64,000 bases of DNA, from the sequence record LT598654.1; one strand, given 5' to 3'. The position numbers were made by a program, and so were the translations under genes. Below are positions 22,043-63,865 of this stretch, in pieces. Position 1 is the first letter of the stretch. Every line of letters begins with the position of its first letter. The notes beneath the pieces are model-generated. The model searched no databases. It had not been told where the DNA came from and saw nothing but the letters and a program-made list of their open reading frames with translations.

Positions 22043-22054
22043 TATTTACAGTTT
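22043..22054 (-). promoter_or_regulatory. Candidate promoter box AAACTGTAAATA
   Basis: 28 nt upstream of the ATG at 22014. The motif recurs at six other starts. Confidence 0.5.
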
Positions 22055-22291
22055 AGGGTCTAGCAAGGATTTGTACAGAGACATACCCTTATCCGTAAGT
22101 TCCATAGAACCTGAGTTCTCGTAAACAACAACGAGGTCAAGCTTAACAAAACTCTTAACAGTAGCCTTAGCCACAGACCTGTACACACGATCAGACTTTG
22201 CAGTTCCAGCACAACATATATCACCTAGAAACTTCAAAGCAGATACCTGTTTACGAGTTAACTTAAATCCGTCTACTTCAATTCCTGTCAT
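22046..22291 (-). CDS. Hypothetical small protein, possibly winged-helix
   Basis: TVKSFVKLDLVVV...MELTDKG resembles a wHTH wing. Confidence 0.6.
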   Translation of the reverse strand: MTGIEVDGFKLTRKQVSALKFLGDICCAGTAKSDRVYRSVAKATVKSFVKLDLVVVYENSGSMELTDKGMSLYKSLLDPKL

Positions 22292-23027
22292 TACATACTA
22301 GGTTCTCTCCGAACCCTGCCTCCTTGTACAAGTCCTGTAATTCAAAAATTTTAACAGGATAGTTTCGATTTTCCTTGAATGCCCAGTCTGCTCTACTGCT
22401 ATACAACTCTACGTTATCCCACCAAAGCATAGGGTCTTTACCTGCTTCTTCGGTAAGCTTTTCATCACGACGAGTCCAACCAATACCTCCGTTATACATG
22501 GATAGTGCTTTAGACCACGAGTTGCAGTAGTCTTTACCTCGTGCGTTACCATCTAACCATTCCATATAGTAGATCATAGCACGTAATGACCATTCAGGAT
22601 CAAGAGGCTCACCAGTTCCTAGTTCAGCGAACTTATCACCAACCCACTCTGCTGTGCTGTCAGTGAACTGTGTAAGTCCTGTAGCGTAAGGGCTTTTAGC
22701 ATCTGTACGCCACGTACTTTCTTTGTGAACTTGTGCAGCGAAGGTACTAACAGGAGCATTAAGACCGAAAGTATACTGAGCGTAACGGGTTAGGCTACGC
22801 TTGTATACGAATGCGTTGTCAGGAACACCTGGATAGCGTGTTATCTCCTGCTCAACAACAGGAATAGTTTCTTCTACCACTTCACGCGGAATAGGAGTAG
22901 TTTCGACCTGAGCCTCTACTTCTACTTCAACGGAAGGTGTTTCGGTATCCTGTTCGTCTTCACTGGTCTGTTTGCTACATGCACCTGCAAGTATACCCAT
23001 TAAAAATATAAAGTATACTTTTTGCAT
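22278..23027 (-). CDS. Lytic transglycosylase (SLT family) with an N-terminal lipoprotein signal
   Basis: AQVHKES catalytic Glu, GLTQF, ALSMYNGG. MQKVYFIFLMGILAGAC lipobox. ATG at 23027 just after the holin stop. Confidence 0.85.
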   Translation of the reverse strand: MQKVYFIFLMGILAGACSKQTSEDEQDTETPSVEVEVEAQVETTPIPREVVEETIPVVEQEITRYPGVPDNAFVYKRSLTRYAQYTFGLNAPVSTFAAQVHKESTWRTDAKSPYATGLTQFTDSTAEWVGDKFAELGTGEPLDPEWSLRAMIYYMEWLDGNARGKDYCNSWSKALSMYNGGIGWTRRDEKLTEEAGKDPMLWWDNVELYSSRADWAFKENRNYPVKIFELQDLYKEAGFGENLVCNDRN

Positions 23028-23029
23028 GG

Positions 23030-23362
23030 TTAGATACCTACTGAAATACCGATAATACAAGCGAAGATTATTAACGCACGGCGGATAAACGCGAAAGGAA
23101 TAGAACTTTTAACGTAGTCGTATTCTTTCACCTCGTAGTCGTTGGTCTTGTTGGAAAGTTCCATCATTCGGTGATACATATCACTTGGACGGAAACGTCG
23201 AAATAACAACAAATCAATCCAGTAACCAAGCATTGCTGCAATTGAGATAAGACTTACCTTGTATAGGATAAGCTGAGCCTTTGCTTCGCTCATGTACCAG
23301 ATACCAAGATAAAGCAATACGGTGATTAATGCAAAGATACCGCGTTGAATATTATTAGTCAT
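23030..23362 (-). CDS. Putative holin (Mu/D3112-like prophage holin family)
   Basis: Three hydrophobic segments. YKVSLISIAAMLGYWID...RP...RRALII pattern. Adjacent to the SLT gene. Confidence 0.8.
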   Translation of the reverse strand: MTNNIQRGIFALITVLLYLGIWYMSEAKAQLILYKVSLISIAAMLGYWIDLLLFRRFRPSDMYHRMMELSNKTNDYEVKEYDYVKSSIPFAFIRRALIIFACIIGISVGI

Positions 23363-23375
23363 TTGTTTTTCCTAG

Positions 23376-23621
23376 TTAATAGCTTGCAAAAAATACAAAA
23401 TAAACCAAAGAGGCTAAAATGAAATGAGCACTTAACCCTGCTATAATAGCCTCGTCTTTTTTAAATTTACCTCGAATAACAGTGTACTTGTTCTTGAAAT
23501 AAAGTTTGTCTTTAAAAAACAATTTTAAAACACACTGTCCAATATAGGCATTAATGCTAATGGAATAAAAGAATACTCCGATAATAATAAGTATTGCGTA
23601 GTTTGTTCCAGGTGATAACAT
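23376..23621 (-). CDS. Small two-TM membrane protein
   Basis: Two hydrophobic segments, AGGAG RBS. Confidence 0.65.
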   Translation of the reverse strand: MLSPGTNYAILIIIGVFFYSISINAYIGQCVLKLFFKDKLYFKNKYTVIRGKFKKDEAIIAGLSAHFILASLVYFVFFASY

Positions 23622-23630
23622 TAGAGACTC

Positions 23631-25298
23631 CTACATTCGTCGGCTAAATAGTCCGCCTGAAGGTGCAGATTTCTTCTCTTTCTTCTGTTTCTTCTGTCGA
23701 GCCATTGCTTCAAGTTCACGGATTTCAGATTCAGAGTAACCGTCATAATCGATAGAATATTTACCCGCTTCGTTTGCACTCATACCAACATTCTCTTTAT
23801 ACCACTGCATAGCGTCACCAGAGAATTGATATTTAAGTCCTTGCGAATGACGCCAAGTAGATTTGAAACAACCAATCGATTGTCCAAGTTCAGGGTCAAC
23901 AAACATTCGAATGATAGGACTTTGCTTAGGTACGTCTTCGGAAGCAGGAGTCAGTATACGACTAGATTCCTGTTCCCAGTTAGGTGCATTAGACATAGGC
24001 ATACCATAATAATGAGTGTCCCAACGAGGTACGTTCAAACCTACTTGAAGCAATGAGCGCGTACCACATACAAGTCGGATAGTACCTGCGTTTGCGTCTT
24101 CCAGAATCTTCTCACGAATCTGCTTAGCTTTACCACTGCCACCAACGAACTGTGCTGCAATAGTGCTACCCCAAGCCTTGTTAACAGTATCAACAATGTC
24201 TTTAGAATGGTAGACTGTATATACAGGAAACACAATAGAACGTCCGGCTTTCAAGTCTTTCAGGATTTGATCAACGATAAACTTATTACGCTTTTCGTGA
24301 GTTCCTAAGAAACGCATTGCACCTGTCCACGCACTAGGCCCTTTGTTTTGGAACTGTCGTTTGTTCTTAGGCTTTACGTCTGGGGTTTCATGTACATGGA
24401 TAGTAGGAATCAAGGTATCAATCTTGGCTTCGGCTACCTTAGGACCAACAAGTTCTGTCATCAAGAAGTGCTTGCCGTCTTTACGCTTGATTGTTGCAGT
24501 ACAGCCACCTTTATACTTGGTGCGAACACTACCAACAAGCTGAGAAAATTCGTTAGCATTTGCTTTTTGAATTTCATCAATCCACAAAGTACCGAAGTTT
24601 TGATTCAGCCACTTGCGTTTCTTCTTACCGTTCTTATCACTGATAAGAGACTGGTAGGTCATGATTCCAATTTGATACTGTTCAAAGTCCTCTTTCTTTT
24701 CGAGCCAGCCGTACAAACGTTTACCTGTCTTTTCTTCAAGCTTAGGTAGGTTTGTATGAAGCTTAATCTCTTTCAAGAAGTTGTTGAGGTAATCGCGTTG
24801 GTTAGCAATGATAACGAAGCGATGCCCCATTTTGATACCAATAGCGATAGAAGTTACTGTCTTACCTGTACGCGGAGGTGCTTTGATAATACCGTGTTTG
24901 TGATAAGCCCAGTCTTCTACCAGAGGTATTTGTTTAGGTCTTAGTTGACCAGTAAACTTGACTTTGTAATCAAATTTACTCTTAGTACGCAAGTCAACTA
25001 CTTTGAATTGTGAGAACTCAATACCTAGCTTTTCTTCAACGTTGAGGCGATCGCCAATAGGTAACGCGGCATAAGTAACGCCTCGATAAACATAGGTGCT
25101 CCAAGTTCTAATACAACCTTGATAACCACCTAGTTCACAGCTTGCGCATTCTTCGGTGAAGCGTATCTTTCTAAAGTCGCAACTTTTACATATCGTGTCA
25201 TCATAACGGTGATGATCATAATGCTTTTTCAGATCGTCCTCGTCGATGTACTCAAAAGGGATATACATCTTGGCACGTAAGTAGAGTTTATCGCTCAT
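23631..25298 (-). CDS. Superfamily 2 DNA helicase (UvsW-like)
   Basis: APPRTGKT Walker A, IDEIQ Walker B, TAT motif III, GLNVPRWD, QESSRI. Confidence 0.85.
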   Translation of the reverse strand: MSDKLYLRAKMYIPFEYIDEDDLKKHYDHHRYDDTICKSCDFRKIRFTEECASCELGGYQGCIRTWSTYVYRGVTYAALPIGDRLNVEEKLGIEFSQFKVVDLRTKSKFDYKVKFTGQLRPKQIPLVEDWAYHKHGIIKAPPRTGKTVTSIAIGIKMGHRFVIIANQRDYLNNFLKEIKLHTNLPKLEEKTGKRLYGWLEKKEDFEQYQIGIMTYQSLISDKNGKKKRKWLNQNFGTLWIDEIQKANANEFSQLVGSVRTKYKGGCTATIKRKDGKHFLMTELVGPKVAEAKIDTLIPTIHVHETPDVKPKNKRQFQNKGPSAWTGAMRFLGTHEKRNKFIVDQILKDLKAGRSIVFPVYTVYHSKDIVDTVNKAWGSTIAAQFVGGSGKAKQIREKILEDANAGTIRLVCGTRSLLQVGLNVPRWDTHYYGMPMSNAPNWEQESSRILTPASEDVPKQSPIIRMFVDPELGQSIGCFKSTWRHSQGLKYQFSGDAMQWYKENVGMSANEAGKYSIDYDGYSESEIRELEAMARQKKQKKEKKSAPSGGLFSRRM

Positions 25299-25305
25299 GT
25301 TATTC

Positions 25306-25644
25306 CTAACAAAGGTTTGATAATACGTGTGACCACACTTTGGATTTACGGAAAGGTAAGTACGGTGTAGTCTCTTGGAATAGTTTTACAGTACGCCACT
25401 TGGTGCCTTCATCAGTTTCGTAGTCCAAGCTTAACTCAATAGGCATACAGTCTATATCCAATACAGTTCTGCTTAGGTCTAACTCAAACCCACCTACCAT
25501 ACTGAGATAGTTTCTGTACCACTCACGCCCAGCGTTTTCGCGTAACTGTTGAAGATTGTAGTTGCCTGTTGCACATTGCAAGTCTTCTACGTCAACACCG
25601 TAAACGTGGGCTAAGGATTCGAGTAGTTTATCCACCGAGAGCAT
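25306..25644 (-). CDS. Hypothetical protein
   Basis: Co-oriented, overlaps the upstream gene. Confidence 0.6.
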   Translation of the reverse strand: MLSVDKLLESLAHVYGVDVEDLQCATGNYNLQQLRENAGREWYRNYLSMVGGFELDLSRTVLDIDCMPIELSLDYETDEGTKWRTVKLFQETTPYLPFRKSKVWSHVLSNLC

Positions 25645-25840
25645 TCGCTACGCAGTAAGACAGATATGACACAAAGACACGAGGGTCTGGTGTCTGGTTG
25701 TGCTGTTCGCATTCCAACTTATAACGCATACGAGGTTGGAAGAACTCGAAGTACTTCTTCAAAGGAGGATAAAGTTCTTCTTCCTCTACCTCAGGAGTGT
25801 TATCCAAGTCTGCTGATTGTTTTTCTGGAGGCAATGCCAT
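25628..25840 (-). CDS. Hypothetical protein (70 aa)
   Basis: AGGA RBS, co-oriented. Confidence 0.65.
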   Translation of the reverse strand: MALPPEKQSADLDNTPEVEEEELYPPLKKYFEFFQPRMRYKLECEQHNQTPDPRVFVSYLSYCVANALGG

Positions 25841-25849
25841 AGTGTTTCC

Positions 25850-28142: not shown

Positions 28143-28476
28143 CGTCTTTCCGTTCTGTTTGATTTGTTGAATTATTTTTACAGTTTACTACCTTGAACCC
28201 AACAAACTTCGATTGTAAGAATTCTATAGCTAACTGATAGCTCTGAGTCTTTAAAGGTAAGCATCCACCTAGTACACCGACTACGCTAACACCTACCATA
28301 TTGTCCTGCAAAGGAATACACAGTGCAGGAGATTCAATAAGAGTCTCCGAACACACGTATATTGGGCTGACCAAACTACTCATAGTGTCGTAGTCAGCTT
28401 GCACCATTTCATTTAAACGATTAGCAACTGAGGTAAGCAGTTCTAAATCGTGACGTTCACTTAGTTCAGTAATCAT
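28126..28476 (-). CDS. Hypothetical protein
   Basis: Overlapping neighbours, co-oriented. Confidence 0.65.
   Translation of the reverse strand: MITELSERHDLELLTSVANRLNEMVQADYDTMSSLVSPIYVCSETLIESPALCIPLQDNMVGVSVVGVLGGCLPLKTQSYQLAIEFLQSKFVGFKVVNCKNNSTNQTERKDDGESS
28175..28186 (-). promoter_or_regulatory. Candidate promoter box AAACTGTAAAAA
   Basis: 32 nt upstream of the clamp ATG. Confidence 0.35.
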
Positions 28477-32578: not shown

Positions 32579-32590
32579 TGTTTACACTTT
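32579..32590 (-). promoter_or_regulatory. Candidate promoter box AAAGTGTAAACA
   Basis: 36 nt upstream of the polymerase ATG, just after a terminator. Confidence 0.5.
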
Positions 32591-32612: not shown

Positions 32613-32635
32613 AAAAAAGGGACAATTAAGCCCCT
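32613..32635 (-). terminator. Rho-independent terminator
   Basis: AGGGGC-TTAATT-GTCCCT followed by a T-run. Confidence 0.7.
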
Positions 32636-42453: not shown

Positions 42454-42500
42454 GGCATATTTCTCCGGATTAGTATGCTAACATTAAATTACTATATGAA

Positions 42501-47198: not shown

Positions 47199-48257
47199 CT
47201 AAAAATCTGTACTAATACCAAGTTCAGAGATCGCCTCAGCTAGCATGTCTTTACCCCTGAGGTATTCTTTTTTAGAATGACCTGCACCCTTAAATACAGA
47301 TGCTAGACCCTCGTAAGGGTTGATACTAGGTAAGTCGGTAGTCTGATTAACAAAAGACTCTAACTCATTTTCAATATCAATCTTGCCTCCCTTTGCTGTC
47401 CACAACTGAGCAATGTTTGGGTTCTTCAACATCAAGTCAGTAGGTACAACGATACCCTCATTAACGTACAGTCGATACTTGATACCAGGTTCAGTACTAA
47501 GCTTCGCAAACTGCGAACTAGTTTCGATGTGCTCGGTAAGAAGTCTAAAGCCAGGCTTGTTATCTATAAACCTGTGATTGACTTTCATCTTTCCTTCTTT
47601 AACACCAGCTTTAATTTCAATAAAGCCCTTAGGTAAAGCTTCACCGAAGTTGGACTGATATGGGTTACCGCAATATATAACTCTGCGTTTCTTCATGTGC
47701 TGATACTGGTGTATGTGACCGCTTATATTGAAGTCACGACGAGGACTCTTAAACTCCTTGTGTGATTTAAGAGTACGTCCATTATCACCGATAGCGCCAG
47801 TGTATTCCACGTGAACCAGATTTAAACAAGGCTGTTTGTTAGGAATACTCTCCATCACAGGGTGATTCATCATGTTAACAACACAGCCGTCCACTTTGAT
47901 CTGCTCAGGACTGAGATATAAATGGAACGTTTCGAAGAAGCCTTCATCAACCAATAGCTGTAACAAGTCCATGCTTGTTTTAGAAATATCGGAGAAGTCA
48001 TGGTTACCACCGACATAGTAAATGTCTAACAGACCATCGTACTTCTTTATTAACGTAATCATTTTGATGTAGCTGTCTGCTTCCATCTTGTACGTGTCAC
48101 TAATATCACCAGGAATAAATACGTGACGAATACCTTCAGAAATAGCGTACTTGAAAATCTTTTCTACCTCACGCAACTGTCTATCAATGTGATCATGAGG
48201 GAACAGCTTTTTAAGTTTTTCTAAGTGCCAGTCACTGGTTACGATAGCATGTAGCAT
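47199..48257 (-). CDS. sbcD: SbcD/Mre11-family nuclease
   Basis: SDWH, GDISD, GNHD, H and GHIH metallophosphoesterase motifs. Confidence 0.88.
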   Translation of the reverse strand: MLHAIVTSDWHLEKLKKLFPHDHIDRQLREVEKIFKYAISEGIRHVFIPGDISDTYKMEADSYIKMITLIKKYDGLLDIYYVGGNHDFSDISKTSMDLLQLLVDEGFFETFHLYLSPEQIKVDGCVVNMMNHPVMESIPNKQPCLNLVHVEYTGAIGDNGRTLKSHKEFKSPRRDFNISGHIHQYQHMKKRRVIYCGNPYQSNFGEALPKGFIEIKAGVKEGKMKVNHRFIDNKPGFRLLTEHIETSSQFAKLSTEPGIKYRLYVNEGIVVPTDLMLKNPNIAQLWTAKGGKIDIENELESFVNQTTDLPSINPYEGLASVFKGAGHSKKEYLRGKDMLAEAISELGISTDF

Positions 48258-48562
48258 GACTTTAATTCTTCCTTTTCGTTTCTTATATCCATGGTGAAAC
48301 TATCTAAGAATTTCTCCACAGCTTTGTGTCTAATCTTTACAGAGGGTCGTGCAGTTTTCCAGGTACAGTTTTTATAAACATCACCGTCTATGTCATAGGA
48401 TTTAGTGCATCTGCCTCTCTTGTCATATTCGTTAAATCTACAAAACACTAAACGGTTGTTGGCTTTTTCTATATCAAATTGGGTGTAGTCAAAAGAAATG
48501 AAGAAAGTCCAAACACGTTTCAGACCTTTCTCTTTGTTGTTGAGGGTTACTGTTATCTGCAT
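48239..48562 (-). CDS. Hypothetical protein
   Basis: AAGGAG RBS. Confidence 0.7.
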   Translation of the reverse strand: MQITVTLNNKEKGLKRVWTFFISFDYTQFDIEKANNRLVFCRFNEYDKRGRCTKSYDIDGDVYKNCTWKTARPSVKIRHKAVEKFLDSFTMDIRNEKEELKSCYMLS

Positions 48563-48584: not shown

Positions 48585-48596
48585 TATTTACAGTAT
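48585..48596 (-). promoter_or_regulatory. Candidate promoter box ATACTGTAAATA
   Basis: Intergenic, 22 nt upstream of the ATG at 48562, after a terminator-like hairpin at about 48609-48628. Confidence 0.5.
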
Positions 48597-48631
48597 TTGA
48601 AGAAATGAAGGGAACGTCCTTGTTCCTTATT

Positions 48632-49790: not shown

Positions 49791-50762
49791 TTAACTTACC
49801 TTCTTTTTCTTGAGTCTACGACGCTTAGGTTTGGTGGTCTCTTTCTCTTTGGTTTTCTTAGCAGGTTTAGCTGCCGGTTTCTTTTTAGCTAAGGCTTTCT
49901 GTTCTTCGGCAGCTTTCTTCGCTGCACGTTTCTCTTTAGCCTGTCGCTGAAAATCTTTTATGGTAACACCTTGTTGATCACTGTACAGGCTTTCATTGTC
50001 GATAACCTTAACAATGTAGTTCAGGTCGTAAGCCTGCATACCAACTTTATTACCGATAGCTTCGTAGCTGAACGCTTTACCTGATTCTTTGGCTTCGCGT
50101 ATCATAGCACAAGCATCCTGCGCTTTCTTACCTACGTCACTAAGCAAGAGTTCGCGGAATTTATCCTGCTTATATTTGGTTAGGTCTAAGTCACCGCGCA
50201 ACTTTAAGAACATACGCTCCAAAGTATCGGCATCATGACCTTGATAAATCCAATTACAGATAGCGAAGGTAACAGGCTTCTGCATGGTTGAAGACTTCAA
50301 GGTATAAATGATAGTCATCAAAGGCATCAGGATTGTACCAACCGATTTAGTACGGTCGAGAACTTTGGACATATAGTTTTCTTTGTCACGAGAAACAGCA
50401 CCCGGTTCTGCAACAAATTGTTCGGTACGCCATTCAGTCATCAAGTATTTGATACCAGGCATTTCAGGATTGTTTTTAAAGTCCAGCCAAATACTATTGG
50501 TAAACTCTGCACATCGGAAGCAAGGAGCAAACACGTAAAAGCTGTGATGCTTAAATGCTGAGTGCGATAGCAATTCAAAGTTACGACGTAGATCACGGTA
50601 GGAGATAAAAACAATGTTGCGGGATTTCTTTGCAACTGATGTTTTTAATTTTGCTCCGAACGAAACCAAATGAAACTCAGAAGGGTGCATATCATAGGTA
50701 TCATGTGCCCAACTGAGGAATTGTTCTGGCGAATGGTTCGCAATACATAACAAGCGAGACAT
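49791..50762 (-). CDS. Hypothetical protein with a polybasic C-terminal tail (possible degenerate clamp-loader subunit)
   Basis: Alpha/beta N-terminus then helical. The function is speculative. Confidence 0.6.
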   Translation of the reverse strand: MSRLLCIANHSPEQFLSWAHDTYDMHPSEFHLVSFGAKLKTSVAKKSRNIVFISYRDLRRNFELLSHSAFKHHSFYVFAPCFRCAEFTNSIWLDFKNNPEMPGIKYLMTEWRTEQFVAEPGAVSRDKENYMSKVLDRTKSVGTILMPLMTIIYTLKSSTMQKPVTFAICNWIYQGHDADTLERMFLKLRGDLDLTKYKQDKFRELLLSDVGKKAQDACAMIREAKESGKAFSYEAIGNKVGMQAYDLNYIVKVIDNESLYSDQQGVTIKDFQRQAKEKRAAKKAAEEQKALAKKKPAAKPAKKTKEKETTKPKRRRLKKKKVS

Positions 50763-51721
50763 TAAGACTCCTGTTCAGTTATTCTTATACTCTTTTTACT
50801 ATTTACACTTTCGCTCATTCTAGTTTTAAAGAGTTCCTGCAGGTCATCAGGCAGTATCTTGGTGCTAGTAGTGAATCCACCTACATAAAGACTACCGCCT
50901 CCCTCCATGAGTTCAGAGATTTTACCTGCGTGTAGTTTACTTTCTGGAAGTGTGCGAACAGACCAATAACGTTTATTGCCTGTGTCGGTATAACTAAGAG
51001 CAATACCGCACTTACTAGCAAGGATAGTTAAACAACCTTCGACAAAAGTTTTAGGTATGTTTAATATTGGAACCTGCTTGTCCAGAATATCGTAGTACTC
51101 AGCCCGGTTGTTGTACGAGTTAACTAGGCTTTCAATAAACTTGTAGTAATGGTGACCGTCGTTGATCAGCTTTGCTACAGATTCAGTATTACGAAGGCGC
51201 TCCAAGTTGTTTTGGAAGAAAGTATTCAAACTGATAAAATCAAAGTGAACACTAAGACCCATACAAATAAAATATGAATTAGGTACAGTTGGGTTGGACT
51301 GCCTTACCTGCATATCTTCAATAGCCAAAAACAACTGAGGCACAGGCTGGTCATCTACAAAGTGAGACCATGCCAAACAACAGCTGGCTCTGTTTGAACT
51401 GTGAATGACCTCAAGTTTTTTACGAATACTCGGGTCAAAGGATTCAGCGATATGCTTTGTACCTGGATGGTGATCAATAAAGTAAACTTTATCAGCCGAG
51501 TATACCAGAGTATCAAGATTACGCATAGCGATAGACAGTCCGATTATATAGACTGTCTTGCCCGAAACATCATAGGTATGTAGGTTTTCAAGTGTACAAT
51601 AATCAACACCTTCGTAGTGAGCACTGTTTTGGAAAATCTTCCAAGCAGCGTATGCTCCTGCTTTTCCATTAAGAGTACCTTCGTGGAAGAACACTATGAT
51701 TTCTTTATTGAGCTTTCTCAT
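50762..51721 (-). CDS. DHH-family phosphoesterase (partly degenerate)
   Basis: FIDHH, SRWSVR-type motif (YWSVR), GGG in DHHA1. Motif I reads HEGTLNG. Confidence 0.75.
   Translation of the reverse strand: MRKLNKEIIVFFHEGTLNGKAGAYAAWKIFQNSAHYEGVDYCTLENLHTYDVSGKTVYIIGLSIAMRNLDTLVYSADKVYFIDHHPGTKHIAESFDPSIRKKLEVIHSSNRASCCLAWSHFVDDQPVPQLFLAIEDMQVRQSNPTVPNSYFICMGLSVHFDFISLNTFFQNNLERLRNTESVAKLINDGHHYYKFIESLVNSYNNRAEYYDILDKQVPILNIPKTFVEGCLTILASKCGIALSYTDTGNKRYWSVRTLPESKLHAGKISELMEGGGSLYVGGFTTSTKILPDDLQELFKTRMSESVNSKKSIRITEQES
50800..50811 (-). promoter_or_regulatory. Candidate promoter box AAAGTGTAAATA
   Basis: Within the 3' end of the DHH gene, 37 nt upstream of the ATG at 50762. Confidence 0.45.
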
Positions 51722-54164: not shown

Positions 54165-54640
54165 TGTCCTAGCAGTATTCCTAAATGTGATCTAAAGGCG
54201 TTTGTGGTGGCATTAAAATGAGCGTAGGCATTTGTTACCAGCTTGTGTGCTCGATGCTCTAATCGGTATACAAACTCGCGCAACTCACTTGCATCGTACC
54301 CGTCATACTCTGACTGGGTGCATTGGTATTCAGAAGTACGACAATAGATAGGTACGCCGTTTACTGTATCCTGGATAGTAGGTAAATCGAACTCCGCAAA
54401 AACTGATCCATTGTCCGCGTATACACAGCAGTTAAGAAATACTTTAGAGCGCAGGGAAAACAAACTAGGATTCGTGAGTACACTATCCTGTTTCAAGTTA
54501 CGCAGATTAGGAGAGCCTGCGATTTTTTTAATATGTTCTTCCAACTCACCCGCATCATTTGTCAATCGTTCAAACTGAATGCCAACATCGGAATGTATTG
54601 AATACCGGTAGTCAAAAGCGTAGACGTAGAATTGCCTCAT
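54161..54640 (-). CDS. Hypothetical protein
   Basis: ATGA overlaps with both neighbours. Confidence 0.7.
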   Translation of the reverse strand: MRQFYVYAFDYRYSIHSDVGIQFERLTNDAGELEEHIKKIAGSPNLRNLKQDSVLTNPSLFSLRSKVFLNCCVYADNGSVFAEFDLPTIQDTVNGVPIYCRTSEYQCTQSEYDGYDASELREFVYRLEHRAHKLVTNAYAHFNATTNAFRSHLGILLGQ

Positions 54641-55329
54641 AAGGTTTGAGTCTCGTAATCTTCTCTAACAAGGTAGTGAATAGGTTCTATGTACGCGGCA
54701 TACGTAGCACGTAAGATAGACACCATACCCTCACTAAGTTCAAACCTTGATTTACAGATTTTTAAACTGTTTTCAAACGAACCATCTTTGCTTCGAAGGC
54801 TACTTGCAGCCCAGTCACACATCATTTCAATAACATCGATAAGAGTCATTGAACTTACACCATCTTCATAATGCTCAGGGTGGTGACGGTTGTGGGCATA
54901 GTGATTATCCAACGCAGGTTTCAAACCTACCAAGAACTGGTTGTATTCCTCACTGCCAAACTTTGCAGTCTTTAACTTAGGTGTATACTCAGTGAAAAGT
55001 TCTACCTCAACGGAACCAAGTTTAGACTGGTCATGCGTTAACATACGTTGCATCATAACACTGGCAATAAGGGTAGGTGACGGTGTATTGAATTCACTAC
55101 GAGTGTTATGTACAACACTCAATAAGTCGCTAGGTAACGAAACACGTATTCCATTCTTGGAAGAACAGGCAGCAAGAAGACTGATTAAAGTGGAATCCTG
55201 AGGCTCTGGCATAGTGGTGTCTACAGCAATCAGGTATCCATGAATACAAGCTGCGATAAAACGTTGAACATGCCAAATATGTTGGTAAGTATCAAAGCCA
55301 ACCGCTTTTTGCTCTGGGGTATATTCCAT
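54637..55329 (-). CDS. DUF5662-like HD-type protein
   Basis: THDQSKL, HYAHNRHHPEHY, DVIEMMCDW.A.S.R. Confidence 0.75.
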   Translation of the reverse strand: MEYTPEQKAVGFDTYQHIWHVQRFIAACIHGYLIAVDTTMPEPQDSTLISLLAACSSKNGIRVSLPSDLLSVVHNTRSEFNTPSPTLIASVMMQRMLTHDQSKLGSVEVELFTEYTPKLKTAKFGSEEYNQFLVGLKPALDNHYAHNRHHPEHYEDGVSSMTLIDVIEMMCDWAASSLRSKDGSFENSLKICKSRFELSEGMVSILRATYAAYIEPIHYLVREDYETQTL

Positions 55330-55917: not shown

Positions 55918-55957
55918 GTGTAGATGCCTACCAACTATAAATTATAGACACCTACAC
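55918..55957 (-). promoter_or_regulatory. 14-bp intergenic RNA stem-loop containing TATAAT
   Basis: GTGTAGGTGTCTAT pairs with GTAGGCATCTACAC, with G-U pairs only on the minus strand. Confidence 0.5.
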
Positions 55958-55966
55958 CTTAGCGTA

Positions 55967-56602: not shown

Positions 56603-56611
56603 TGTATTTCC

Positions 56612-56830: not shown

Positions 56831-56848
56831 GTAAATCGGTTTTGTCCA

Positions 56849-57067: not shown

Positions 57068-57073
57068 AATGAC

Positions 57074-58366
57074 CTACTTTTTCTTTTTGGGTTTAGACAT
57101 ATCCAACAAACCGCTGAATACATCGTCGATTACCAACTCACTGAGTTGAAGCATAGAGTAACGTTCACTTCGGATTGCAGGTACAGTCAGTATTGTGTGC
57201 TCGATCTGTTGAAGACAGTGCGCAATCTTCATTACCAACGCAAGGCTAACATTAATCTTAACCTTTTCTTTTGCTTCCAACTTCTTCTTGGCTTCAAAGT
57301 AATACTTACCGTTGTAAGGTACGTACTTGACTGCACCTGCGCTGTACTTGATCAACCAATCAGTAAGGTTTAATGCGCGTCGAACCAACTGGGTAGCATC
57401 TTTACTTTGGTCAATGATACCAACAATGCTTTCCAAATCTTGGTTAAGAGTATACAAGAACAAACTAACTGCTAACTTGTCTAACTCAGCACCCGCGGTT
57501 TTGTCCTGCAACGAGATAACTGAATCGTCATCGAAGTCGGCATCACCACTGTTAATAGCACTAAGCAAACCATCCAATAGAGTGAGAGCTTGACGTACCT
57601 GACCTTCGGAAAAATCAGCGATAGTGTACAAAGCACCTTCAACGTTCTTCTTGTTCTTTTTGTTTACTTCAATACCTTCTTGATCAAGAACATGGTAAAG
57701 ACGTTCAACGATTAACTCGCTAGGTACTTTACGTAGATTAAGAACTTGGCATCGGTTCTGAACAGTAGACTTGATCTTGGCAAGGTCTGTAGTACACAGA
57801 ATCCACATAGTACCAGGAGTTGGTTCTTCTAGTGGAATAAGCAAAGCTTCCAGCGCCTTACCTGACAACAAGTGGACTTCATCGATGATATAGATACGGC
57901 GGCGATAAGTTGGAGCAAACATGGTAGTGCTGATCAACTTACGGATTTCTTCAACAGTAGAGAACTCTCCACTGTTACGGTACACAACATCAGGTAAATC
58001 TTTCTTGTACTGGCAGAAGCTACACTTACCACAGCTAGACATAGTTTCGCAGTTGACGTAACGCGCTATCATACGAGCAAGTGTTGTTTTACCGCTACCA
58101 GTCTCACCTTCGATAAGAATAGATTGAGGGAACTGTTTCTTTTTAATCCAGCCTTTAAGCTTCTTAACTGCCGCCTCTTGACCAACAAACCCGTCCAGGT
58201 TGTGAGGTCTGTAGACAGCACCTAGATTTCGAGTAACCAGATCACCGTTTTCGTCTTCAACCATATCCGGTTTTGCAGAAACCTTAGATTTCTTAGCTTT
58301 GCGCTTGACTTCGGTTTTGCCAGATTTAGTGCGCTTGGTCTTGCGCTTTTCTTTACTAGTTGCCAT
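57074..58366 (-). CDS. dnaX: Clamp-loader ATPase, DNA polymerase III gamma/tau-like
   Basis: YRPHNL, GETGSGKTT, CGKCSFC, IIDEVH, LEEP, TVQNRC, GQVRQA. Confidence 0.9.
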   Translation of the reverse strand: MATSKEKRKTKRTKSGKTEVKRKAKKSKVSAKPDMVEDENGDLVTRNLGAVYRPHNLDGFVGQEAAVKKLKGWIKKKQFPQSILIEGETGSGKTTLARMIARYVNCETMSSCGKCSFCQYKKDLPDVVYRNSGEFSTVEEIRKLISTTMFAPTYRRRIYIIDEVHLLSGKALEALLIPLEEPTPGTMWILCTTDLAKIKSTVQNRCQVLNLRKVPSELIVERLYHVLDQEGIEVNKKNKKNVEGALYTIADFSEGQVRQALTLLDGLLSAINSGDADFDDDSVISLQDKTAGAELDKLAVSLFLYTLNQDLESIVGIIDQSKDATQLVRRALNLTDWLIKYSAGAVKYVPYNGKYYFEAKKKLEAKEKVKINVSLALVMKIAHCLQQIEHTILTVPAIRSERYSMLQLSELVIDDVFSGLLDMSKPKKKK

Positions 58367-59246
58367 TTAATAAACCAACCTTATTCAATTGTTCTATGTC
58401 TTGTTCCGAGTACATTACAGGAAACAGTGCGTATATGTTATTAACTTGATTTACAGCTTTTTGTCGAACAGATGCCCGGCGTTCAGACATTTCAAGATTT
58501 ATCTCAACCAGTTCATCCAACCATATCTCACTACAATGATCCGATTCGTCGCTACACGGCAAGTTATAGCCTCGTTCAGTGTAACGCAGATAAGCCTCAG
58601 TTAGTTTACGTGCGCGTTCCAACAAAGACGTTTCTTCCAGGTCACTAAATAAAAGAGGAGTACCTGCTTCACTAGTCCAAGTTAAGTTTTCATCGCGCTC
58701 ACCATTTGAGGCAATAACTTGGTCACTACCTAAAAGGAATATAGTTTGAGGCGCAACACCCATAGGAGGTTTTGCAACATCGTCATCGATACCTGTTTCA
58801 GAGGTAAGCAAGTCCACAAGCGCGTCTTTAACCGCAGGCAAATCTTCTGCTTGGTACTCAACAGGGAGACCCCAGTACGTGGTAGTTAAAGGTTTTCTGA
58901 CTACCAGCTTGTTTATCTTATCAATTACCTGTGTGCGAACTTCTGAAACCAAAAAGTTAACGTGGTCAATTCTATCGAAGTAGAACTGGGTGTTTATTCG
59001 CTCACCTTTACTGGTAGCATCCATGACAACATTCAACATGTTGCGTTGTGACCGACAAAGAAACAGGTAGTAGTCGATAATTTTGTTTGGATCGTCAATG
59101 TATTCCTGAGGAACAACAAAGTCTTCATCGGACGGATGACGTAGAACAGGTGCAGTTAAAGAACCAGGGCTACCACATATCAAACACTCCAGGTCTTGGT
59201 GCGTTAGTTCATCGGCTTGCTTACTCAATATACTTGGATTAAACAC
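58356..59246 (-). CDS. Hypothetical protein (GTG start)
   Basis: AAGGA RBS, follows a terminator and promoter box. Confidence 0.7.
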   Translation of the reverse strand: MFNPSILSKQADELTHQDLECLICGSPGSLTAPVLRHPSDEDFVVPQEYIDDPNKIIDYYLFLCRSQRNMLNVVMDATSKGERINTQFYFDRIDHVNFLVSEVRTQVIDKINKLVVRKPLTTTYWGLPVEYQAEDLPAVKDALVDLLTSETGIDDDVAKPPMGVAPQTIFLLGSDQVIASNGERDENLTWTSEAGTPLLFSDLEETSLLERARKLTEAYLRYTERGYNLPCSDESDHCSEIWLDELVEINLEMSERRASVRQKAVNQVNNIYALFPVMYSEQDIEQLNKVGLLNGN

Positions 59247-59282
59247 AGATCTTTCCTTCTTATTTGGGTGGTGTATACAGAG

Positions 59283-59294
59283 AGTTTACACTTT
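59283..59294 (-). promoter_or_regulatory. Candidate promoter box AAAGTGTAAACT
   Basis: Intergenic, 36 nt upstream of the start at 59246, just after a terminator. Confidence 0.5.
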
Positions 59295-59304
59295 TCACAG
59301 CCAC

Positions 59305-59330
59305 AAAAAAAGGAGCATAAAGCTCCCTTT
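59305..59330 (-). terminator. Rho-independent terminator
   Basis: GGAGC-TTTAT-GCTCC followed by T7. Confidence 0.8.
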
Positions 59331-59331
59331 C

Positions 59332-59964
59332 TTATTTTGACTTTAAGTTCTTGTGGAAGTTAAATCTTCCGAACAGTCTAAGACCTTTGTACATTAACCA
59401 ACTGCGCCACGCGGGTACTCTACGCATCAGCAAACTTAGATAGAAGATTTCGTCGGCATGACGTTGACTAACCTTCTTGATAGTCGATGACAGGTAGTTG
59501 TCTTCTTCACGTTCAGCACAGGCACACAGGTGCATTTCAACATCGTGCCGGTAAAACAAATCGTGCAACACACTAGGTTTAGCTGCGCGTCCTATGGGGC
59601 TAACTAACCACCACAAAAACTGTGGTGACGAAACAAAGTCCGTAGTAAAGCCTGCTCGTATAGTTATGTGAACATAGAAACACTTTGCATTTAGGGGCAC
59701 TTCACTTAAAGGAGGACGATTAAGAAAACATTGCATGTAACCGTTAGGAAGTTGGTACATCCAAAAATAAAAGTCCATGCCGTCTAGTAACGTAAAGTCT
59801 TTCCCGTTATCCAACATTTCTACACGAGGGTTCGCATTAAAGTTGGCGACATAGGGTTTAAAATCTAATTGCTTGGTTACATCAACAGTTCGCAAGACAT
59901 AAGTGTCATTGAGAATAACCTGTTCATGAGGACTAAGCCGTTTTTCTACTTCTGTTTTTAACAT
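59332..59964 (-). CDS. DUF1353-family protein
   Basis: AGFTTDFVSSP, PSVLHDLFY, ADEIF, WRSWLMYKGLRLFG. Confidence 0.8.
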   Translation of the reverse strand: MLKTEVEKRLSPHEQVILNDTYVLRTVDVTKQLDFKPYVANFNANPRVEMLDNGKDFTLLDGMDFYFWMYQLPNGYMQCFLNRPPLSEVPLNAKCFYVHITIRAGFTTDFVSSPQFLWWLVSPIGRAAKPSVLHDLFYRHDVEMHLCACAEREEDNYLSSTIKKVSQRHADEIFYLSLLMRRVPAWRSWLMYKGLRLFGRFNFHKNLKSK

Positions 59965-60211
59965 GTGAATAGATTCCAGATCCAGATATTGCTAACCAGA
60001 ATAGTTCTATAAAAAAGCTACCCAAGTTAAAATTAAAAAGCAGACTTATAGTTAGCAATATTGCACCACCCAGATTGGTTAAATCAGCACTCAGGCTATT
60101 GCTATCCCATTGACCTGATCTGCATTTGTAATATGCAAACACAACAAGGGTAGCTCCAACGAATCCGATAATCTGTGGAATGCTGATTACCAAATCAAAT
60201 AAATTAAACAT
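59933..60211 (-). CDS. CBU_0592-like small three-TM membrane protein
   Basis: IGFVGATLVVFAYY...NLGGAILL..S...N...F.IE.FW..IS pattern. Confidence 0.7.
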   Translation of the reverse strand: MFNLFDLVISIPQIIGFVGATLVVFAYYKCRSGQWDSNSLSADLTNLGGAILLTISLLFNFNLGSFFIELFWLAISGSGIYSHVKNRSRKTA

Positions 60212-60869
60212 TAACTTCTAAGTTCCTTAAAACCTTATCGACTTCGGCAAGGACTTCATCAACAGTATGGTGTTGATGGATAGTACCATGTGACTCAATG
60301 TGGGAATTCCAACAACGCTCAGACTTTAGAATCTGAACATCAAAAGTAGAGGTAAAGTCTTCGATAACACTTGCCGAATCCTCACCTACAATGTGAACTT
60401 CATCACATATATAGTCCAATACAAAATCAAGTTTAGACTGTCCTATGCGTGTGGTTGCAAGACAATCAAAATAGATATTATTGTCGGTAAGTAGTTGGTG
60501 GGTATTGCGATAACCCTCTGGATGAAAACCTCTAGCAGTAACAAATGCCACATAGACACCTGCCCTTCTAAACTTCTCTACCATAGGTGCAACATAATCG
60601 TAGACCGGAACAACGTTCATGTAGTTATAGCTAAGCAAAAAGTGTCTGAACGTATTTGCTTCACTTATTTCTTCGAACCATTTCCCAACGTTTAGTTCCG
60701 TTAGGTCATCCAGTTTTACTTGTTTATCAAAAGCCTGGTTAAGATGATCGAGCATGACTTGCGTACAAGGATAGATAAAATCATCTATATCTAGTACCGC
60801 AATATGTTGACCCTCAGTAGGGAATGTTTTTTGATAAATTTTATTTCCTGTAGCTACCTCTCTAAGCAT
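60204..60869 (-). CDS. HAD-superfamily 5'(3')-deoxyribonucleotidase-like phosphatase
   Basis: LDIDDFI, FVTAR, K, GEDS. Confidence 0.75.
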   Translation of the reverse strand: MLREVATGNKIYQKTFPTEGQHIAVLDIDDFIYPCTQVMLDHLNQAFDKQVKLDDLTELNVGKWFEEISEANTFRHFLLSYNYMNVVPVYDYVAPMVEKFRRAGVYVAFVTARGFHPEGYRNTHQLLTDNNIYFDCLATTRIGQSKLDFVLDYICDEVHIVGEDSASVIEDFTSTFDVQILKSERCWNSHIESHGTIHQHHTVDEVLAEVDKVLRNLEVNV

Positions 60870-60901
60870 AAAATACTCCTGTTTATTATTCTTATGCGTA
60901 C

Positions 60902-60942
60902 CTGCTTAAATTACTAAGCAGAGGAACTGATGCCCCTCTGCT
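60902..60942 (-). terminator. Two overlapping, mutually exclusive hairpins
   Basis: AGCAGAGG/CCTCTGCT (8 bp) and CTGCTTA/TAAGCAG (7 bp) share AGCAG at 60917-60921. Confidence 0.5.
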
Positions 60943-60948
60943 ATCTGG

Positions 60949-61332
60949 TTAGGATGTAGCTAATTGGATACCAGTGGTTGTTTCAAGGTATCCTTTTTCC
61001 AACTGACTCGGACACTCGTATACCAAACAATTGATACCAGGCTCCAGACGAATAGGTAACAGACCTTCGGGGTCAAGAGTAACAAACGGTTTATCAATGC
61101 TCAATTGCATCGTTACACCAGTTTGAGTGCGCTGCGGAATAGCATGTACTTCACGGCATTTTCTTAACACAACACCTGCATAGGCTGGTGCCATACTATC
61201 CTGATTTTTTGACACGCTTGGAATAAGGTGCTCTACCTTACCAATCAGTTCTGCGCCAGTAAACAGCTTGATAATAATCACACTGTCTTGATACTGACCT
61301 AATTGGCTTAATTGAATTTGAGTTAATTCCAT
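60949..61332 (-). CDS. Hypothetical protein, possible Sm-like fold
   Basis: IIIKLFTGAELIGKV N-terminal pattern. Confidence 0.6.
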   Translation of the reverse strand: MELTQIQLSQLGQYQDSVIIIKLFTGAELIGKVEHLIPSVSKNQDSMAPAYAGVVLRKCREVHAIPQRTQTGVTMQLSIDKPFVTLDPEGLLPIRLEPGINCLVYECPSQLEKGYLETTTGIQLATS

Positions 61333-61342
61333 TTTGTTTCCC

Positions 61343-62431
61343 TTAGTAATGGACTGTTAGATTTTTCAAAGTGAACTTACACGCTTTCTCTACGTCTTTA
61401 GGCAGAGAATGACCACTCAAGAAATAGCTAAGGGACTCGGCGAAAAACTCCTTAACGTTCTTGGTAGCGTACTCGGTAATATCAGCTTTAAACGTACTGT
61501 TGTCGGTAACAGTGGGCCACAACTCTTTGAACTTTTCCGGCTTGGTTAACGCCAACGCTTCCAGTTCTTCTTTGTCAATGTGGTGAATCTTTTTGACGTA
61601 GCTGATCACTTCCTTGAACGCATCGTGTTCATCAGGATTCTCACTGCGCAATTCTTTTAGAATTTGAGGGAACCGTGAACCTTGCTTAACGAATTCGATG
61701 ATCACATCCGCTAAGGTATCAAGATCATCCTGTTCGATACGCTGTACCTGTGCGCGTTTGTTAAATAGTGCAGACCAACGAGCCTTAATATCACGAGGAA
61801 CTTGTCGGTACCAGATACCATGTGAAGATTCATGCAGGATAAGCTCAACCAGGTATTTTGAATCGGTTAAATCTACAGGCATGAAGTTGAGTACATCCTG
61901 CGGACCTGCATTGGTGGTCTTCATCACATAACAACCTTCCATCTTGGAAGTGTTAGACTTGAGGTTGATATGCGTCAGGCAACCCATCCAGTTATCACTG
62001 GCTTTGTCTTCCAGAATCTTGTGAGCCTTCTTCATAGCTTTAACAAAGATATTGGCTTCACGGTCAGTAAGTGCATTACGATAAACGTGAATAGGCTTGG
62101 GCCAACCTGCCTTAAGGTCACGCTGATATATTTCAATGTTAACACCGAAAGCTTTACCAGTCACCTGCGGTTGAGGACCTAAGTTACAAACGATTTGGTC
62201 AGGAGTAAACTCAACAACTTTAGGTTCATCGCTGGTAGCAGATTCTTCCAACAAAAGCTTGCCTTTGCTAAATGCAAGACCTAGAACCTTTTTGCTTTCC
62301 AGTTTGATAATCAGGTAATCATCTTTACCATAAGTAAAATCAGACTTCGCTGACTTGGCTTTTGCTGATTTAGATTTAGTTTTCTTTTTGGTTGTCTTGG
62401 TTGACGATCTAAGTTTTTTGCGTAGTGCCAT
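61343..62431 (-). CDS. Putative zinc metallopeptidase (HExxH; anthrax-lethal-factor-like C-terminal motif)
   Basis: LILHESSHG and EYATKNVKEFFAES. Confidence 0.65.
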   Translation of the reverse strand: MALRKKLRSSTKTTKKKTKSKSAKAKSAKSDFTYGKDDYLIIKLESKKVLGLAFSKGKLLLEESATSDEPKVVEFTPDQIVCNLGPQPQVTGKAFGVNIEIYQRDLKAGWPKPIHVYRNALTDREANIFVKAMKKAHKILEDKASDNWMGCLTHINLKSNTSKMEGCYVMKTTNAGPQDVLNFMPVDLTDSKYLVELILHESSHGIWYRQVPRDIKARWSALFNKRAQVQRIEQDDLDTLADVIIEFVKQGSRFPQILKELRSENPDEHDAFKEVISYVKKIHHIDKEELEALALTKPEKFKELWPTVTDNSTFKADITEYATKNVKEFFAESLSYFLSGHSLPKDVEKACKFTLKNLTVHY

Positions 62432-62438
62432 CGTTTCC

Positions 62439-62801
62439 TCACATTACATCGCGGCGGCGAGAGATAGTATAGGAGACATTAAGTATCTCGACTCCTACGA
62501 TAATAGATTTGATATATGGTTTTATATCAACGATAGAGGTAACAGGAATTCGGATGCGTCGCAGCCTACCTACAGAGCCAAGTCCTGTGTCTTGAAGCAA
62601 CGACAACCTTTCGTTGTCCTGCGTGTTTTCTACCAGCCTGTCAATAGCTTGTTCTACCAGTTCCAGTCCCCGATAGTTACCAGTGATAGTAAAGATAAAA
62701 GACCTGGAACACTCCACTGATTCATAGGTGGTAGCCAACGTAATCTTGACGCTGTGCTCGGTACCTTCATTAACACGCGAGGGATCGTATTTGATTAGCA
62801 T
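62439..62801 (-). CDS. Hypothetical protein
   Basis: AAGGA RBS, TAATG coupling. Confidence 0.65.
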   Translation of the reverse strand: MLIKYDPSRVNEGTEHSVKITLATTYESVECSRSFIFTITGNYRGLELVEQAIDRLVENTQDNERLSLLQDTGLGSVGRLRRIRIPVTSIVDIKPYIKSIIVGVEILNVSYTISRRRDVM

Positions 62802-63865
62802 TAGGATTCCTTAGCATACCTCGTTAATAGCTCTTTACACATTTTATCCCAGTTGGTAGAGCTATCATCTACAAATCGACGAATGCTAGAAATCTTTTCG
62901 AGGTCAAGTTGGTTACCGATCTGATCACATACTAGGATAAGCTTCAATTCGTCGATGTGCTGGTAATCGATATAGACACACAGGTCAACCAAATCACTAG
63001 GAACATATCGGAATGCTTCAAAGTCCAACAACCAGCTAGCCCAATAGTTAACATCACCGAGTTGTTTTGCATCCTCTTGGAAATGTTTGTAATCGGCTCG
63101 GTGCTTTTCGACATGCTGAGCACTGGTATTAAGGCGGGTAGTGGTACTACGCAACTTAACCGTGTTACGCAAACCCTTGATCATGTTTATAACCGAATAG
63201 AGGTGTTCAATACAATTTGAGTCTACACGGCTTGCCATCATCTTGTTATAAGCCTGCTGGCTAGGCAAATCCATGCGTTCCAGTATATCATCGGTTAGGT
63301 GTGCCTTGAAGAAATCACGGTACTTGCAAAAGAAGGCACAGAACTCGTCTACTATGTACCAGTTCTCGTTGTACTTGTTGTATTCTCTACGCTTAAACCA
63401 TGCACTAGGCTGCTTGCGTACTTCATAACCTAAACCTGAGTTAATGGCTTCTGTAACCCACTCCAACACATAGGTATCTGGAGTGTACGTAAACTCTTGC
63501 TTGCCTAGCTTAGCATAGGTTTCCAAGAACACCTTTAACTGATTATCCTGCTGCCTCTTGAGGTGCTCTTTCTCTATGTGCTTGTTGTGTGCAACAACAC
63601 AATCATCATACACCTGCTTGGCTTCTTCAAGCTTGAGGTTAGCGGTCTTTTTTCTGCTAACCATTTCAGGTACGAGTTTACGACTACGGTTCAATATCTG
63701 CTTGGCAATATAACTATTACCTACCTCTGCTCCTACTGCACGTATATCAACACTATCGACGGTGACTATACTGGCGCGAATCATACGAGATACTAGGAAC
63801 TCCCGTACCTTGTTAACATGCTCTGCTATGCGAGTGTCTAACCACTCTGTATTGGCATAATTCAT
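62801..63865 (-). CDS. Hypothetical protein (354 aa)
   Basis: GGAGA RBS, long ORF. Confidence 0.75.
   Translation of the reverse strand: MNYANTEWLDTRIAEHVNKVREFLVSRMIRASIVTVDSVDIRAVGAEVGNSYIAKQILNRSRKLVPEMVSRKKTANLKLEEAKQVYDDCVVAHNKHIEKEHLKRQQDNQLKVFLETYAKLGKQEFTYTPDTYVLEWVTEAINSGLGYEVRKQPSAWFKRREYNKYNENWYIVDEFCAFFCKYRDFFKAHLTDDILERMDLPSQQAYNKMMASRVDSNCIEHLYSVINMIKGLRNTVKLRSTTTRLNTSAQHVEKHRADYKHFQEDAKQLGDVNYWASWLLDFEAFRYVPSDLVDLCVYIDYQHIDELKLILVCDQIGNQLDLEKISSIRRFVDDSSTNWDKMCKELLTRYAKES
62832..62843 (-). promoter_or_regulatory. Candidate promoter box AATGTGTAAAGA
   Basis: 30 nt upstream of the ATG at 62801. Weaker match, inside a coding region. Confidence 0.3.

Follow-up and report, generated by a model that had tools for sequence, protein, structure and literature searches.

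A strand-oriented TGTAAA box ahead of replication and metabolism genes of jumbo phage NCTB, a probable middle promoter without a -35 element

The DNA examined here (the window) comprises the final 64,000 bp of record LT598654.1, the circular genome (257,877 bp) of Phage NCTB, a marine giant (jumbo) phage from surface water. Positions are those of the window and equal the record position minus 193,877; positions of the record are named as such. The phage belongs to a clade of jumbo phages that includes Lu11, PaBG, the Erwinia phages Y3, Yoloswag and Alexandra, and the Dickeya phages JA and AD1 (PMC7412058). All genes of the window are coded on the minus strand. A short box around the word TGTAAA precedes genes of replication and metabolism on this strand, and it is probably a promoter of the middle, replication-phase genes of the phage. 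Its sites in the window are given below together with the hairpins that accompany them. The scores are those of a weight matrix refined from box sites, with a score threshold of 10; lengths are in nucleotides (nt) and amino acid residues (aa), and ORF stands for open reading frame.

22043-22054, minus strand: putative TGTAAA-box promoter AAACTGTAAATA; score 16.2; 28 nt before ATG 22014 of a 210-aa gene (family phrog_20094, 'DNA polymerase'); the gene of GTP cyclohydrolase I (FolE) comes next
28175-28186, minus strand: putative TGTAAA-box promoter AAACTGTAAAAA; score 14.7; 32 nt before ATG 28142 of a 440-aa gene, within the 3' end of the upstream ORF
32579-32590, minus strand: putative TGTAAA-box promoter AAAGTGTAAACA of the polA-queE operon; score 19.6; 36 nt before ATG 32542
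32618-32635, minus strand: intrinsic-terminator-like hairpin with T-run, immediately upstream of the polA box (terminator scan and sequence)
48585-48596, minus strand: putative TGTAAA-box promoter ATACTGTAAATA; score 17.1; 22 nt before ATG 48562 of a 107-aa ORF, which is followed by a gene for an SbcD-like recombination endonuclease
48611-48626, minus strand: terminator-like hairpin whose T tail is weak; precedes the 48585 box (terminator scan)
50800-50811, minus strand: putative TGTAAA-box promoter AAAGTGTAAATA; score 16.2; 37 nt before ATG 50762 of a 323-aa gene, within the 3' end of a DHH-phosphoesterase-like gene
54746-54757, minus strand: second copy of the 12-mer CTGTAAATCAAG; score below 10, a poor match to the consensus; 110 nt to the start at 54640
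58445-58456, minus strand: possible internal promoter CTGTAAATCAAG; score 14.6; within the 296-aa gene; the clamp-loader start (58366) is 83 nt away
59283-59294, minus strand: putative TGTAAA-box promoter AAAGTGTAAACT; score 18.5; 36 nt before GTG 59246 of the 296-aa gene, which is followed by a clamp-loader (DNA polymerase III gamma/tau-like) gene
59312-59326, minus strand: terminator hairpin with a run of T, upstream of the 59283 box (terminator scan and sequence)
62832-62843, minus strand: weak, doubtful box AATGTGTAAAGA; score 10.0, at the threshold; 30 nt before ATG 62801

An earlier sequence-only reading of this DNA had listed seven 12-mers of this kind, and all seven are found on the minus strand at the positions that it gave. 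Their TGTAAA words lie at 22045, 28177, 32581, 48587, 50802, 59285 and 62834, and the starts that follow them at 22014, 28142, 32542, 48562, 50762, 59246 and 62801. The claimed distance of 22-37 nt to a start holds for the 3' ends of the 12-mers, and the three terminator-like hairpins that it placed before boxes are likewise present. The view that the seven form one class stands for six, which fit the sharp consensus AAAA[C/G]TGTAAA[C/T]A and score 14.7-19.6. The seventh (62832-62843) is doubtful: it is without the consensus A[C/G] ahead of TGTAAA, and a 9/12 match to a sigma70-type promoter (62868-62841) overlaps it. The same reading had also pointed to an identical 12-mer in two places. Both copies of CTGTAAATCAAG are present, against 0.02 expected, and one of them (58445-58456) is a plausible site; the copy at 54746-54757 is probably not a promoter of the TGTAAA class.

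The anatomy of the box was read from 35 aligned sites. The information content is about 1.2-2.2 bits at each position from -4 to +6 around TGTAAA, and the A-tract, the C/G and TGTAAA itself are nearly invariant. Upstream of this core no -35 element is visible, the mean information over -50 to -12 being 0.08 bit, in agreement with the earlier statement that no -35 hexamer accompanies the box. Downstream, 77% of the sites have an A at 9 nt past the last A of the box (+14 from its T), often as ATA, while the positions in between hold no more than about 0.3 bit each and no conserved hexamer. The end of the box lies 24-52 nt from the start codon. This conserved A is likely to be the transcription start; for the 22043 box it would be the A at 22036. 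With this A as +1, TGTAAA would occupy about -14 to -9 and TAAAYA -12 to -7. The T and A at -12/-11 would then resemble the -10 elements of the sigma70 family, but an A and not a T would stand at -7. The box does not conform to a canonical sigma70 promoter (-35 TTGACA and -10 TATAAT at a spacing of 16-18 bp). Matches to sigma70-type consensus in the window are not above shuffled sequence (33 versus 36.8 and 40 versus 42.5), and none of them coincides with the six strong boxes.

It is important to note that the signal of the box is one of position and strand, not of word frequency. In the window TGTAAA is in fact depleted (28 copies, 70 +/- 8.5 expected), and the longer word AASTGTAAA, with five copies against 3.3, is not above shuffles. 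All five, however, have the orientation of the genes and lie 30-39 nt ahead of a start. Genome-wide counts were made on the full NCTB record, rebuilt from four further loci and the window. Here 21 of the 39 copies of A[CG]TGTAAA are in sense orientation 20-55 nt before a start, where 2.2% would be expected (binomial p = 7e-25); this is the positional enrichment for which the earlier reading had proposed a check. Copies of TGTAAA that lack the preceding A[C/G] have little or no start-position bias. When the 70 nt (-70 to -1) before each of 316 called genes were compared by word content, CTGTAAA was the top 7-mer (20 occurrences versus 2.2 expected, p = 5e-13), and CTGTAAA and ACTGTAA both ranked above the Shine-Dalgarno words. 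The weight matrix gives 29 sites with a score of at least 16, one of which is antisense to a gene; at a score of at least 18 none of 15 is antisense.

The location of the boxes at the heads of transcription units is an important feature. Three of them follow the terminator-like hairpins at 32618-32635, 48611-48626 and 59312-59326. Elsewhere in the genome, boxes are found at divergent junctions, where transcription must begin: at record 6629 the box faces the primase gene, and at record 113306 it points to gene 142, with the TAATTT box of the opposite gene in back-to-back arrangement. The genes preceded by boxes include those of primase, an SSB-like protein with RecA, gyrase A, a 5'-3' exonuclease, and polA with queE. 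Further examples are the phrog_20094 polymerase-family gene with folE, a QueD-like gene, the SbcD-like nuclease operon and the clamp-loader operon. The box regulon is confined to replication, recombination, nucleotide-metabolism and DNA-modification (7-deazaguanine) genes. None of the tail or head genes in the window is preceded by a box, as had been claimed. In the long virion block the sole boxes (record 160009 and 160877) stand before the QueD-like gene and its neighbour, and the class therefore tracks gene function and not genome region.

The boxes also bear on the gene models beside them. The start of polA is probably 32542 and not the annotated 32482 (segment 32483-32542, minus strand), because both the promoter geometry and the alignment of relatives from residue 1 point to it. 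On the basis of promoter geometry, BN7874_286 probably starts at 50762 instead of 50441 (segment 50442-50762, minus strand). The 107-aa ORF directly after the 48585 box (48239-48562, minus strand) has a good ribosome-binding site and is missing from the GenBank annotation. Two of the top-scoring boxes, on the plus strand at record 17822-17827 (score 19.4) and 21802-21807 (score 19.8), are followed by 270 nt and about 1,500 nt, respectively, in which no ORF is called, and ARAGORN finds no tRNA downstream of either. These orphan boxes may drive small unannotated genes or non-coding RNAs.

The box is not confined to NCTB. The word AASTGTAAA occurs 30 times in NCTB, 25 times in Lu11, 13 times in PaBG, 12 times in Y3 and 16 times in the Yersinia phage fHe-Yen9-02, whereas a reversed-pattern control gives 1-4 matches (2 in the whole PaBG genome). 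TGTAAA ranks with the most strongly enriched 6-mers ahead of genes when 40-kb loci of Y3 and fHe-Yen9-02 are analysed. The box stands ahead of polA in both of these phages, and ahead of the recombination endonuclease gene in Y3. The 8-mer TGTAAATA is the commonest form of the box in Y3, fHe-Yen9-02 and Lu11. At the junction of a sigma-like gene and the SSB gene, six of eight genomes have the box (NCTB, Lu11, Y3, JA29, AD1 and Xanthomonas PhiXhv-16), and the flanks of these sites do not align. Relatives are also found among IMG/VR contigs (L017-L019), whose polA is 72% identical to that of NCTB; there a hairpin and a box lie 34-36 nt before polA, and in L017 and L018 a box also lies 30-32 nt ahead of the orthologue of the 440-aa gene.

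A promoter of this kind has already been predicted in a relative. The GenBank record of Pseudomonas phage Lu11 (NC_017972 / JQ768459) contains regulatory 16-mer features that begin with CTGTAAAT and that its depositors had independently labelled 'putative middle/late promoter'. All three of the features that were examined start with CTGTAAAT after AAAA, and one of them is the syntenic site at the sigma-SSB junction. The Dickeya jumbo-phage paper does not mention promoters, and a full-text literature search on the 8-mer of the box gave nothing relevant among the matches listed. What appears to be new is the extension to NCTB and its clade, the separation from the late TAATTT class, the statistics and the link to two sigma-like genes. 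A box class of this type is unsurprising in a large lytic phage, and it overturns nothing that is known.

The TGTAAA box has a counterpart in a second single box, TAATTT(a/t)(a/t), which precedes virion and other late-looking genes, among them both tail-sheath genes and several genes of the window. Of the 116 TAATTT sites in the genome, 21 are found 15-45 nt ahead of a start (2.2 expected, p = 8e-15), and TAATTT is also one of the leading upstream words of Y3 and fHe-Yen9-02. Judged by these positions it is probably a late promoter class. A third type of upstream element is a 55-nt repeat, present in about eight near-identical copies from record 16.8 to 59 kb, ahead of small genes of unknown function. 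Each repeat consists of a T-run, GGTACAAAA, a TATA-like word and TTTTGCTATAAT, and closes with an extended -10 like TGCTATAAT. A further GGTACAAAA element, at record 60962, has a TGTAAA box after it instead. By their layout the repeats look like an early promoter class for host sigma70 with a conserved upstream element.

17865-17870, minus strand: TAATTT copy of a sheath gene, 62 nt before the start
42486-42491, 55939-55944 and 60908-60913, minus strand: TAATTT copies, 32-38 nt before a start
Record 16836, 26619, 27574, 39417, 46418, 47063, 47565 and 58920, plus strand: early-type repeats, outside the window

The group to which NCTB belongs has been described as jumbo phages without an RNA polymerase but with sigma factors (PMC7824862). 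No gene of the phage RNA polymerase beta family was found in NCTB, and the host core enzyme must therefore transcribe its genes. The search for a phage sigma gene that the earlier reading had proposed leads to two sigma-like candidates, both outside the window and both putative readers of the boxes.

The first candidate, BN7874_019 (record 12900-13955), is 38% identical to PaBG gp118, a published sigma70-like protein, and matches phrog_17569 'RNA polymerase sigma factor' with E = 1e-102. Many of its homologues carry Pfam Sigma70_r2 (PF04542). The profile of the family aligns to SigA positions 155-201, interpreted as regions 2.1-2.3. The structural model has a pLDDT of 79.6 and can be superposed on sigma70 from about residue 107 to 445 (Z of 11-16, up to 16.2); the aligned part we take to be regions 1.2 to 2.4. 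Residues 240-351, where region 4 would be located, have lower model confidence and are hardly covered by structural matches. With BN7874_019 alone as the query, no relatives were found in IMG/VR.

The second candidate, BN7874_090 (record 63966-65132; phrog_19229, 'unknown function'), is the orthologue of PaBG gp112 (30% identity) and is conserved in 66 phage records. The PaBG protein was reported to be weakly SigmaE-like by HHpred (PMC7412058). In an unbiased structural search of 48,161 chains, sigma domain 2 was the dominant match for residues 142-241 and accounts for more than 20 of the 41 best matches, with middling Z and a model pLDDT of 65.7. The best of them is the N-terminal domain of SigE (Z 8.5, root-mean-square deviation 2.4, 79 of 80 residues). 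Whole ECF sigmas align over residues 146-388 of this low-confidence model. The modelled fold is suggestive of a sigma-like (ECF-like) protein but not secure.

These observations can be brought together as follows. We consider it probable that AAAA[C/G]TGTAAA[C/T]A is the promoter of the phage middle (replication-phase) genes, consisting of a single -10-type element without a -35. This agrees with the proposal of the earlier reading, a phage-specific and probably middle promoter, and draws on several features of the sequence: the enrichment by position and strand, the placement at unit heads, the anatomy, the regulon, the conservation across the clade and the Lu11 annotation. Transcription would most likely begin 9 nt past the box, at the conserved A found there, and a leader of about 15-35 nt would carry the ribosome-binding site. 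The host core enzyme would carry out the transcription, most likely redirected by a phage sigma-like protein, for which BN7874_019 and BN7874_090 are the candidates. Three classes of promoter could then be distinguished: the TGCTATAAT repeats for early genes, the TGTAAA box for replication, recombination, nucleotide-metabolism and 7-deazaguanine genes, and TAATTT for late (virion) genes.

A more specific proposal, which we put forward only tentatively, is that the clade runs a two-step cascade on two promoters of the -10-only type, with the BN7874_090 family reading TGTAAA(T)A and the BN7874_019 family reading TAATTT. According to this scheme BN7874_090, an ECF-like factor with a long N-terminal extension, would turn on the replication and DNA-modification genes. 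In NCTB the operon that contains BN7874_019 begins with a TGTAAA box (record 9525), and Lu11 is arranged likewise; this hints that BN7874_019 is made in the middle phase and reads the TAATTT box of the late genes, a box that fits the TAnnnT rule, so that it would turn on the virion genes. The reader of TGTAAA would then be BN7874_090 or another factor. A sigma cascade is the most economical reading because two sigma-like proteins and two non-host boxes are conserved together.

Several points weigh against the promoter reading or against the proposed readers. The 'middle' timing is deduced from gene function alone. PaBG has no box at the sigma-SSB junction, as is also the case in Sen-NF, and its 50-kb replication locus shows no k-mer enrichment. 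Within genes, TGTAAA occurs at 0.58 of expectation in sense and 0.41 in antisense orientation and is not among the extreme hexamers; this moderate depletion gives weak support to selection against stray intragenic boxes. The only RNA-labelled run that contains the phage, of 2016 ('marine metatranscriptome', run X1), covers a stretch of the phage (window 57500-63400) at a flat depth of about 160-180. This run is probably DNA (carry-over) and the assembly source of the phage, and its contigs with flat, DNA-like depth therefore yield no start sites. As to the proteins, a six-frame search of the NCTB record with Pfam Sigma70_r2/r4 gave no matches, and direct Pfam and PDB sequence searches with BN7874_019 gave none either; the family was recognised only through PHROGs, the Pfam tags of homologues, a profile and a fold. 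The model of BN7874_090 is of low confidence (mean pLDDT as above) with sigma-like matches of middling Z, Foldseek found no match for it, and an hhalign profile comparison of BN7874_090 with the BN7874_019 family showed no similarity. Finally, BN7874_090 is downstream of TGTAAA boxes just as BN7874_019 is, and therefore neither protein is clearly made before the class fires.

Among the alternatives, the one that survives best is that the box is a promoter read by the host sigma70 holoenzyme, either directly, as an odd extended -10, or with the help of a non-sigma phage activator or appropriator of the MotA/AsiA kind. A start at the conserved A would place T and A at -12/-11 as in TATAAT, with TG just upstream, the A-tract could serve as an UP-type element, and the box occurs in phages of several gamma-proteobacterial hosts that share a very similar sigma70. 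However, the A at -7 replaces a near-invariant T and the -35 is absent, and the early genes of the phage are preceded by a class of their own, TGCTATAAT, that is clearly sigma70-like. The version with an activator meets the further difficulty that there is no conserved -10 downstream and that the box is too near the start codon for an activator site at -30. No match to MotA or AsiA (PF09114, PF09010) was found in NCTB, Lu11 or Y3, although very divergent analogues may exist. In addition, the clade conserves two sigma-like proteins together with two boxes that are not of the sigma70 type. For these reasons we regard reading by host sigma70 as rather unlikely.

It is less likely still that the box is not a promoter at all and acts in mRNA processing or translation, or as the operator of a DNA-binding regulator. 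An RNA signal would equally be expected to show strand specificity and to lie at a fixed distance from the start codon, and several boxes lie within the 3' end of the upstream gene and would thus be present in read-through RNA. This does not account for the boxes directly after intrinsic terminators and at divergent junctions: no upstream transcript is available there and a promoter is required, and no alternative conserved motif is present at those places to act as one. The box is therefore better taken as a promoter than as an RNA signal or operator. Rfam gives no family matches in the window, and the box resembles known -10-type boxes. That it arose by chance from the composition of AT-rich intergenic DNA, as the unremarkable word count of the window (5 versus 3.3) might suggest, can practically be dismissed in view of the positional p of about 1e-24, the conservation at orthologous sites with non-aligning flanks and the 12-30 matches against 1-4 in the reversed-pattern control.

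Two further sets of observations concern the phage more generally. Near-identical phages (about 98%) are present in three runs, from an aquaculture study and two marine metagenome studies (window 57500-63400), and runs of one further marine study show similar word shares. Footprinting with close relatives in four DNA runs was set aside, the divergence of only about 2% being too little. In the NCTB gene interiors examined, several hexamers expected 27-45 times are completely absent, including the palindromes ACGCGT, ATGCAT, GATATC, GCATGC and TCTAGA. The asymmetric CAGCTC, GACATC and GAGATG are absent as well, and GTGCAC, GACGTG and GATGAG are each found a single time, a pattern that resembles strong restriction-site avoidance.

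If the TGTAAA box is a promoter as proposed, about 30 middle promoters provide a readable map of the transcription units of NCTB, separate from the late (TAATTT) and early (sigma70-like) ones. By conservation this map would reach a clade of jumbo phages of Pseudomonas, Erwinia, Dickeya, Yersinia, Xanthomonas and marine hosts. The geometry of the box suggests corrections to several gene starts and exposes unannotated ORFs, and two candidate reader proteins can be named. For the biocontrol phages of Erwinia and Dickeya it offers candidate phage-specific expression signals. The system may be one more case in which phage sigma-like factors reprogram the host RNA polymerase through minimal single-box promoters.

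It is important to compare the box with promoters of known systems. The closest are the annotated promoters of Lu11, which share with NCTB the AAAA and CTGTAAAT core and the location a few tens of nt before genes. The Lu11 label merges middle and late as a prediction, whereas the NCTB class is separable from the TAATTT virion box. The NCTB box also accepts G besides C before TGTAAA and C besides T after it, unlike that of Lu11, and the NCTB record is without promoter annotation.

The extended -10 promoters of sigma70 (TGnTATAAT) are similar in that TG lies just upstream of a hexamer starting with T-A and the -35 is dispensable. In the NCTB box, however, the TG abuts the hexamer without the one-base spacer, and the hexamer TAAAYA ends in A and not in T. 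The true extended -10 type in NCTB is that of the early promoters, TGCTATAAT. A middle promoter of the T4 type, with a MotA box about 12-13 bp before a sigma70 -10, was considered and rejected: there is no conserved downstream hexamer and little room for one, and MotA and AsiA gave no match.

In the sigma cascade of Bacillus phage SPO1, gp28 serves the middle genes and gp33/gp34 the late genes. Each temporal class there has its own promoter, which the host core enzyme reads with sigma-family proteins of the phage, and NCTB has two sigma-like genes and two non-host boxes. The promoters of SPO1 are bipartite (-35 and -10), while both NCTB boxes are single elements. The SPO1 sigma proteins are unrelated in sequence to the sigma-like proteins of NCTB, for which the pairing of factor and box is putative.

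The late promoters of T4 consist of TATAAATA at -10 and are read by gp55 with gp33 and the gp45 sliding clamp. Like the T4 late box, the NCTB box looks like a single 8-bp element of the -10 type without a -35, and TGTAAATA differs from TATAAATA by one base; a resemblance to T4 late promoters had also been noticed in the earlier reading. T4 redirects the host core polymerase with a phage factor, and NCTB probably does so as well. The second base of the NCTB box is G in all sites, unlike T4, and its seventh base is T in a minority of them. The NCTB box also has a conserved upstream A-tract that the T4 late box lacks. No counterpart of the gp55 family is detectable in NCTB, Lu11 or Y3 (phrog_234 and phrog_12791, no match at E <= 10). 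The two also differ in the genes served: the T4 late box marks virion genes, while the NCTB box marks genes of replication and metabolism, as had been claimed, and the virion genes of NCTB carry TAATTT. If the tentative two-step cascade were true, a promoter architecture of the T4 late type would serve middle genes in these phages, with a reader unrelated to gp55.

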